Shown in pieces: positions 26,897-27,145 of a stretch of 64,000 nt of DNA; the stretch's first letter is position 1; each line of letters starts with the position of its first letter. The notes under the pieces are model-generated. The model did no database searches. It saw only the letters and a list, made by a program, of their open reading frames with translations, and had not been told where the DNA came from. Origin of the DNA: Saccostrea cucullata. Its lineage: Eukaryota. Location of the stretch: the NCBI RefSeq assembly GCF_032062105.1, contig NW_026931071.1, positions 62,001 through 126,000 on the forward strand, in the 5' to 3' direction. The position numbers and the translations under genes are program-made.

Positions 26897-27145
26897 ACCA
26901 GTCAGCGAGGATTTTCCTCACTACACTGGTCCGCCTTATACGTAGTCAGTGTGGATTTCCCACGCTACACTACTAATAAAATTATCCATTAACTATAGAC
27001 ACTCAACCTAAATTATTTCCAGTCAGCGAGGATTTCCCTCACTATACTGGACCGCCTCGTAAGCAGTCAGTGTGGATATCCCACGCTATACTGCTAAGTA
27101 TACAACTCTGATTCAGTGAGCGAGGATATTCCTCACTATACTGAA
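26897..27145. repeat. Array of five ~33-nt hairpin units in the LINE inter-ORF region
   Basis: Units at 26897-26930, 26942-26973, 27018-27051, 27062-27095 and 27112-27145; core AGT(C/G)AGYGWGGA-TWT-YCCWCRCTAYACT with self-complementary arms. Confidence 0.9.

Follow-up and report, generated by a model that had tools for sequence, protein, structure and literature searches.

Between the two open reading frames of a LINE retrotransposon in the oyster Saccostrea cucullata lie five related hairpins, and the question is whether such an array is a selected structure of the element and, if so, what it could do there. The locus belongs to a stretch of 64,000 nucleotides (RefSeq assembly GCF_032062105.1, contig NW_026931071.1, positions 62,001 to 126,000 of the forward strand), which is called the window below and in whose numbering positions are given. 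A preliminary description made from the sequence alone had proposed a candidate structured cis-element, and as shown below its observation is confirmed while its interpretation is supported only in part. In fact our results revealed that the array is an expanded copy of a hairpin module kept between the two genes by LINEs of molluscs whose ORF1 has a predicted SGNH-esterase fold, and by its position near the ORF2 start codon it probably acts in ORF2 translation or RNA-protein assembly, although such a function is inferred only.

The array and its host element

All five units are present as previously described (Table 1), and the last of them ends 47 nt before the ORF2 AUG. Each unit of about 34 nt consists of a 5-6 bp basal stem of the form NNN-AGU/ACU-NNN, an asymmetric internal loop with one unpaired base on the 5' side and two (A-Y) on the 3' side, an invariant A-U pair, an upper stem and a 5-nt loop. 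The outer pairs of the basal stem differ between units but remain complementary (accagt/actggt, gtagt/actac, tccagt/actgga, agcagt/actgct, ttcagt/actgaa), while the upper stem alternates between two types which differ by an A-U to U-A swap at the fourth pair and which have a non-Watson-Crick second pair, C.A or U.G. Units 1+2 and 3+4 form a duplicated 79-nt dimer that is 87% identical, so the array grew by duplication of an A+B pair. The region folds far better than shuffled sequence, with z = -7.66 on the + strand and -7.78 on the - strand and 0 of 200 shuffles as stable. A degenerate unit pattern hits the 1.17-Gb genome 13 times against 2 for the reversed control, and all 13 hits lie in four copies of this LINE family; moreover a covariance model (R1) found no such hairpin in the window outside the array.

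Table 1. Features of the hairpin-bearing LINE in the window (R1, covariance model score)
Feature	Position	Strand	Description
ORF1	26086..26853	+	predicted SGNH/GDSL-esterase fold; frame open from 26086, start codon lost in this copy; stop UAG at 26851-26853
Closing helix, 5' arm	26874..26884	+	CUACUGUAACA; 11 bp, 100% complementary to the 3' arm; 20 nt after the ORF1 stop
Hairpin unit 1	26897..26930	+	type A, upper stem GCGAGG/CCUCAC; R1 53.7 bits
Hairpin unit 2	26942..26973	+	type B, upper stem GUGUGG/CCACGC; R1 51.7 bits
Hairpin unit 3	27018..27051	+	type A; R1 56.6 bits
Hairpin unit 4	27062..27095	+	type B; R1 55.6 bits
Hairpin unit 5	27112..27145	+	type A; R1 49.7 bits
Closing helix, 3' arm	27167..27177	+	UGUUACAGUAG; 15 nt before the ORF2 AUG
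ORF2 start	27193..27417	+	AUG at 27193, hydrophobic conserved leader peptide, 2A motif GDIEVNPGP (aa 67-75, nt 27391-27417)
Rest of ORF2	27418..30900	+	PHD finger, APE endonuclease, reverse transcriptase; broken by frameshifts and by a 209-bp repeat inserted at 28551-28759

ORF1 has 58 homologues, in Mytilus, Pinctada, Mizuhopecten and others, among which the S-D-S and D-G-I-H motifs are invariant. Pfam and PDB sequence searches with ORF1 were negative; however, its AF2 model (pLDDT 93) has GDSL lipases, acylhydrolases and PAF-AH as best Foldseek matches in the PDB, with E down to 1.8e-6, and this predicted fold confirms the esterase identity. The preliminary description regarded ORF1 as AUG-less and, together with the 2A peptide and the array, as part of an unusual translational-control unit. 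An AUG-less ORF1 as a designed feature is not supported, since the frame matches the N-terminal consensus of its homologues, which start with Met in at least 90% of 29 sequences, and the first codons are degenerate in this copy, so that the missing AUG is decay and not design. For ORF2, the leader and the 2A motif are conserved in other lineages and species, and Pfam searches of the intact paralogue of 1168 aa in the copy C347 gave RVT_1 (2e-33) and Exo_endo_phos(_2). The element is provisionally named a CR1/L2-group LINE. The genome has three further copies of the family, namely C347, which is 96% identical with an intact ORF2 but a truncated ORF1, C15229, which is 82% identical and decayed, and C23751, which is 5'-truncated inside the array. 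The window copy is dead, and no copy with both ORFs intact was found in this genome. As for expression, no RNA read at 95% identity or better covers 25694-27663 in one metatranscriptome and three oligo-dT runs, which is absence of evidence only; low-depth contigs cover only parts of ORF2, and one RNA contig skips 28550-28760.

Homologous hairpins in other lineages and species

The hairpin is not private to this family. The genome was first searched with the ORF2 leader peptide, which is independent of the hairpin, and lineages only 33-43% identical in that peptide were found to carry one or two homologous hairpins directly upstream of the ORF2 AUG. Among these three other lineages of the genome, the locus C1605 has one unit located 18 nt after the ORF1 stop and 5 nt before the AUG, the loci C5860 and C15807 have two units ending 3 nt before the AUG, and C17488 likewise has two units 3 nt before the AUG. 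A Mytilus edulis element, reached by an ORF2 protein search (55-57% identity), has two hairpins between its ORF1 stop and its ORF2 AUG. JGI metagenome contigs were then scanned with an ORF1 profile, again blind to the hairpin, and 20 loci (L numbers below) were returned. Among them the model R1 found sense-strand hairpins just downstream of ORF1 in L081, L085 and L088 (one unit each, 5 nt before the AUG), in L072 (three) and in L077 (two), and a second model, R2, added a weak hit in L075. A related type II hairpin is carried by L074, L082, L086 and L087, with the core C-G-A-N-AGUGG, a 6-nt loop and CCAC-R-ACG on long basal stems of unrelated sequence, while L089 has a degenerate array; R2 did not recognise the type II hairpins or the L089 variant, which rest on folds and alignment. 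This survey leaves out the loci of the ORF1 homologues from Pinctada, Mizuhopecten and M. galloprovincialis.

Covariation and substitution patterns

We aligned 23 type I units from about 10 lineages, and the 13-pair structure is paired in 88.6% of cells, against 24-55% when the partners are slid by 1-3 columns. Three stem pairs show 2-4 pair types and are never unpaired: pair 12-42 (CG 17, UA 4, AU 1, UG 1), pair 13-41 (AU 19, GC 4) and pair 21-32 (CG 10, UG 6, UA 4, AU 3). The covariation score is 0.318 against 0.161 +/- 0.019 in shuffles, and 0 of 500 shuffles reach it; a set of 10 units gave the same picture. However, the comparison is with shuffles and not with a phylogenetic null, the units are paralogues and orthologues of uneven relatedness, and many of them were picked up by a structure-aware model, which biases pair counts towards the structure. 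Pairs 19-34 and 20-33, the second and third of the upper stem, are the exception, since every unit has at least one non-canonical pair there (U.G, C.A, A.C or A.A). The preliminary description had given this position as C.A or U.G only, whereas other lineages have A.C or A.A at the neighbouring pair. A conserved wobble geometry was considered here, but such pairs are also the expected products of CpG transitions from GCGCGG/CCGCGC, so selection could not be separated from mutation bias.

Within the family, the domain 26874-27177 differs between the window and the C347 copy, the two best copies, by 10 substitutions, of which 0 fall in the 152 paired and 10 in the 152 unpaired positions. By contrast the old C15229 copy has substitutions or deletions in four of its five hairpins, 12 of 140 paired against 18 of 135 unpaired. 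Neutral decay therefore destroys the structure, while lineages whose ORF2 proteins are only about 55% identical keep it.

These results bear on the possibility that the array acts at the DNA level or is neutral, for instance as an internal promoter, a transcription-factor site or a slippage-prone palindrome whose compensatory changes come from template switching within hairpins, or that it acts in the antisense RNA or the minus-strand cDNA. In fact the hairpin pairs equally well on both strands (sense 20 G.U and 34 mismatches, antisense 16 and 38), so its wobble pairs do not identify the strand, the antisense fold is the more stable one, and the upper stem is CpG-rich. A resemblance of the 5' half to a Pol III A box was seen by eye only, and there is no B box. 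However, the substitutions between the two best copies avoid the stems, a decaying copy loses the hairpins, and basal stems and closing helices (see below) of unrelated sequence keep pairing over 30-300 nt in different lineages, which no protein-binding palindrome explains. We therefore consider such readings unlikely, and that the element is a selected nucleic-acid structure belonging to the LINE, as the preliminary description had inferred from its compensatory changes, we hold as very likely.

A closing helix around the hairpins

A higher-order feature, absent from the preliminary description, is an 11-bp perfect inverted repeat that encloses the whole array (Table 1). It forms in the MFE fold of the stop-to-AUG region in the window and in the C347 copy, and the C15229 copy keeps it through a compensatory U-A to C-G change. 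Thus a spacer of 339 nt is turned into a compact multibranch domain. Other lineages have closing helices of unrelated sequence at the same place, and the observed flank duplex energy is reached, of 1000 shuffles each, by 0 for the window, 0 for L081, 8 for C5860, 12 for L077, 17 for C17488, 23 for C1605, 67 for L072 and 118 for M. edulis. In C5860, C1605, L081 and C17488 the 3' arm contains the ORF2 AUG or codons 1-4, while neither in the window nor in M. edulis is the AUG covered. In C1605, L081 and M. edulis the 5' arm begins 0-5 nt after the ORF1 stop. The helices of L077 and C5860 use 3-4 G.U pairs, which would be A.C mismatches in the antisense strand; the assignment to the sense strand therefore rests on context, on the AUG-containing helices and on these G.U-rich helices.

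Absence of the hairpin and its occurrence elsewhere

Five relatives, from Pinctada imbricata, Mya arenaria, Mercenaria mercenaria and two ENA contigs, have the same leader-2A-PHD-APE-RT ORF2 but no upstream ORF1, and none has a hairpin: there was no R1 hit above 13 bits with the filters off, and no R2 hit in the four that R2 searched (the Mya locus L069 was left out for its size). Instead, the Pinctada, Mya and Mercenaria elements have a 5' UTR with a shared GCGCATGCGC motif. Lineage L078, whose ORF1 stop and next AUG are one base apart (UAAAAUG), also lacks a hairpin. The hairpin therefore goes with a spaced bicistronic layout, though the distance from the stop to the first hairpin ranges from 15 to about 290 nt across lineages.

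On the other hand, the hairpin also occurs where no ORF2 follows. A genome-wide model search, in which only 150 of about 200,000 candidates were scored, gave 77 hits, about 25 of which are not covered by the following description. Many lie in an AT-rich noncoding repeat of ~385 bp present at 20 or more loci, typically as 1.4-3.5 tandem units with one hairpin per unit, which shares with LINEs only the hairpin plus about 10 flanking nt, and no LINE ORF lies within the 3-kb loci examined. Seven near-identical loci of another type (L052-type) have the hairpin together with a remnant of the first ORF2 codons, a piece that lies upstream of an intact ORF1; the hairpin sits about 40 nt downstream of a TGACGTCA + GCCATCTTG motif, a context that could also suit a DNA-level role, and the whole looks like a rearranged element. 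Moreover L072 has a hairpin about 130 nt upstream of ORF1. These cases argue that the hairpin is a portable recognition module and not only a start-site device.

Such a distribution raises the possibility that the hairpin is purely an RNP-assembly or packaging site, namely the specific RNA target of the esterase-type ORF1p or of ORF2p, multiplied for avidity and without a role in ORF2 translation, and carried by non-autonomous repeats so that they can be mobilised in trans. In favour of this, the hairpin goes with the presence of ORF1 whichever ORF lies downstream (2A-type or another type), its copy number varies from 1 to 5 or more, its internal loop with a non-canonical pair beside a short helix resembles the targets of arginine-rich peptides, and ORF1p has a basic, lower-confidence insert at about residues 160-190. 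Schneider et al. 2013 (PMC3905857) speculated that esterase ORF1ps bind "specific structural RNA elements" through basic peptides, for which this hairpin is a candidate. However, this reading, for which no binding data exist, explains neither why the hairpin abuts the ORF2 AUG (3-6 nt) in four lineages, nor why the closing helices pair with the AUG, nor why lineage L078 does without the hairpin; while it accounts better for the noncoding carriers, we consider it doubtful as the sole explanation.

A signal for RNA processing, stability or export, such as a 3'-end or cleavage signal yielding an ORF1-only mRNA or a CTE-like export element for an intronless RNA, is also conceivable, since in several lineages the hairpin lies 15-70 nt after a stop codon, a geometry like that of histone stem-loops, and since it is repeated in noncoding elements. 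However, no Rfam family matches, the tight link to the ORF2 AUG would be left unexplained, and the read data show no transcript ends, albeit with zero coverage there; this reading is unlikely.

Comparison with known systems

Searches of Rfam 15 with positions 24000-32000 of the window and with six related loci gave at E<=1 only chance hits lying elsewhere (Sarbecovirus 5'UTR at 16 bits, ceN54 at 26 bits), and no ribozyme, histone stem-loop or IRE family reached that level, so these identities were dropped. In the literature, the papers on 2A-bearing LINEs, esterase ORF1p and CR1-group diversity that we consulted describe no inter-ORF hairpin in esterase-ORF1 or 2A-bearing LINEs. The nearest functional analogues are SART1 stop-start coupling, TURBS, the MS2 replicase operator and arginine-rich-peptide RNA targets, to which the element is related by analogy and to none of which it is assigned.

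In SART1 of Bombyx (Kojima et al. 2005, as described in PMC3708506 and PMC3894237), an RNA secondary structure near the ORF1 stop and ORF2 start governs ORF2 initiation through termination-reinitiation, with an overlapping UAAUG and the structure downstream of it. Here the spacer is 339 nt in the window and about 60-260 nt in relatives, only the hairpin-less lineage L078 having UAAAAUG, the sequence-conserved hairpins, shared by many lineages, lie upstream of the AUG, and only the 3' arm of the closing helix reaches the first codons, in four lineages. The TURBS signals of caliciviruses and influenza B (PMC3035654) are structured elements that retain post-termination ribosomes near a stop-start junction, but lie inside the upstream ORF with overlapping stop and start. 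The TURBS motif 1, UGGGA, which is complementary to 18S rRNA h26, occurs at the top of the hairpin in 8 of 23 type I and 4 of 6 type II units; however, its UGG lies inside the stem and it is absent from all five window units, so it was rejected as a defining feature.

In the MS2 and Qbeta phages, a small hairpin at the start codon of the replicase gene is bound by the product of the upstream gene and doubles as an assembly signal, and the start is masked by long-range pairing that translation of the upstream gene opens. That system is prokaryotic, and here the AUG lies in the closing helix and not in the hairpin itself, in some lineages only, while protein binding would be by analogy. The human L1, with its 63-nt inter-ORF spacer and unconventional reinitiation (Alisch et al. 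2006, cited in PMC3708506), and the mouse L1 with its IRES likewise raise the question of how ORF2 is translated from a bicistronic LINE RNA. Human L1 is not known to need a specific spacer sequence or structure, whereas here a specific covarying structure is conserved across species. The targets of arginine-rich peptides (HIV RRE and TAR, lambda boxB), proposed as a model for esterase ORF1p (PMC3905857), share with the hairpin a short helix with an internal loop or bulge and non-canonical pairs (U.G, C.A, A.C, A.A) and an apical loop free to vary, but there is no sequence or family relationship. Finally, the stem-loops recognised by the RT of L2/CR1-type LINEs, for example in eel UnaL2, are also conserved LINE hairpins shared by non-autonomous elements, but they lie in the 3' UTR.

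Interpretation and implications

To sum up, the array is best explained as a five-fold expansion of a conserved sense-strand RNA hairpin module, which arose by duplication of an A+B pair and sits at the tip of a domain closed by a lineage-specific long-range helix that brings the ORF1 stop and the ORF2 AUG close together. We propose, with a probability of about 0.4, that it works as a translational operator. In this view the ORF2 start would be masked or held in position while the domain is folded; a ribosome terminating at ORF1 would melt the 5' arm, which starts 0-20 nt after the stop in four lineages, and ORF1p may also dock on the hairpin, with the ribosome or instead of it, either event then deciding whether ORF2, the RT gene, is initiated. 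The same hairpin may also nucleate RNP assembly in cis. What the analysis itself establishes is the structure, its conservation and covariation, its position, the closing helices and its absence from ORF1-less relatives, whereas any effect on translation and any protein partner are our inference, there being no functional data. Of the functions listed in the preliminary description, namely a binding array for ORF1p or a host protein, an IRES or reinitiation signal, or a packaging signal, none is singled out, as the AUG-occluding helix and the absence from ORF1-less relatives fit both translational coupling and ORF1p binding.

A further-reaching reading, which we regard as unlikely though not excluded, is that of a eukaryotic counterpart of the MS2 operator, in which the esterase-type ORF1p, without a classical RNA-binding domain, would recognise the hairpin through a basic peptide, and binding together with termination-driven melting of the closing helix would switch ORF2 initiation on or off and nucleate the RNP in cis. 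The ~385-bp noncoding repeats would then be parasites of this recognition system.

Two questions about LINEs have long been open, namely how the second ORF of a bicistronic LINE RNA gets translated, and how esterase-type ORF1 proteins, which have no RNA-binding domain, find their RNA. The finding offers one concrete RNA element to test against both, which is small, covaries, is conserved across species, sits at the ORF1-ORF2 junction and is absent from ORF1-less relatives. It also shows that 2A-bearing ORF2s coexist with an ORF1, whereas a published review (PMC3894237) links the acquisition of 2A to the absence of ORF1. Moreover, it gives a covariance model that can annotate this LINE group in mollusc genomes.

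Repeats within the LINE and outside it

In the window copy, ORF2 is interrupted by a 209-bp insertion, and an RNA contig of a related copy skips exactly 28550-28760. The inserted piece has very high read depth (about 35 per strand in the raw runs, thousands in contigs) and the reads run on into unrelated flanks, therefore it is an abundant, dispersed and transcribed short repeat. A second stretch with high RNA depth (about 5 per strand in raw reads, about 960 in contigs) is located just after the LINE, and is probably another abundant repeat.

The hairpin is also carried by an AT-rich noncoding repeat of about 385 bp, which is present as 1.4-3.5 tandem units per locus in contig C5226 (locus L040), in C16355, C17236, C2838 and C15857, and in 15 or more further contigs. 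Each unit bears one LINE-type hairpin with the upper stem GCGCGG/CCGCAC, while apart from the hairpin the repeat has no similarity to the LINEs; it may be a non-autonomous partner or a satellite. Moreover, in seven near-identical loci (L052-L058) we found a composite element, where a TGACGTCA + GCCATCTTG motif is followed by the hairpin and a remnant of the first ORF2 leader codons (ATG changed to TTG), then by a GT-start AT-rich stretch, the same motif again, and an intact esterase ORF1 with its ATG, whereas no ORF2 lies within 350 nt downstream.

Positions of the features (L numbers denote loci, C numbers contigs)
Feature	Location
2A-preceding leader and 2A site	window 27193-27417
Insertion in ORF2	window 28551-28759
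Stretch of high RNA depth	window 31013-31200
Noncoding repeat	L040:1100-2300 (G000:C5226)
Composite element	L052:1400-2700
Palindrome of single-ORF relatives	L068:2520-2560, L069:2600-2625, L070:2770-2790
Region upstream of the hairpins, sense orientation	L065:5446-5800 (G000:C17488)

Variation around ORF1 and ORF2

The single-ORF (ORF1-less) relatives in Pinctada, Mya and Mercenaria share a GCGCATGCGCGAAAA-type palindrome 230-400 nt upstream of the ORF2 AUG, which may be a conserved internal promoter motif. In the C17488 lineage, no ORF1 lies within 3 kb upstream of the hairpins, and the upstream ORF ends with an R-x-R-N-P-P-S-Y-L-K-D-Y motif that looks like the tail of another transposable element; the copy may be 5'-truncated or inserted into another element. 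In the metagenome loci L074, L075, L078, L086 and L087, the esterase ORF1 is followed not by a 2A-leader ORF2 but by a different ORF with no known function, which has a conserved K-K-L-x-x-T-K-R ... G-G-G-I ... D-A-x-S-F-E-L-F region and, in L078, starts one base after the ORF1 stop (UAAAAUG).

As for the peptide upstream of the 2A site, it is itself conserved in the window copy and homologues (L024, L026, L027, L066, L081 and L088), with a hydrophobic, signal-peptide-like N-terminus followed by W-x-H-Q-Q and G-R-R-P motifs. This suggests that the released leader has a function of its own.
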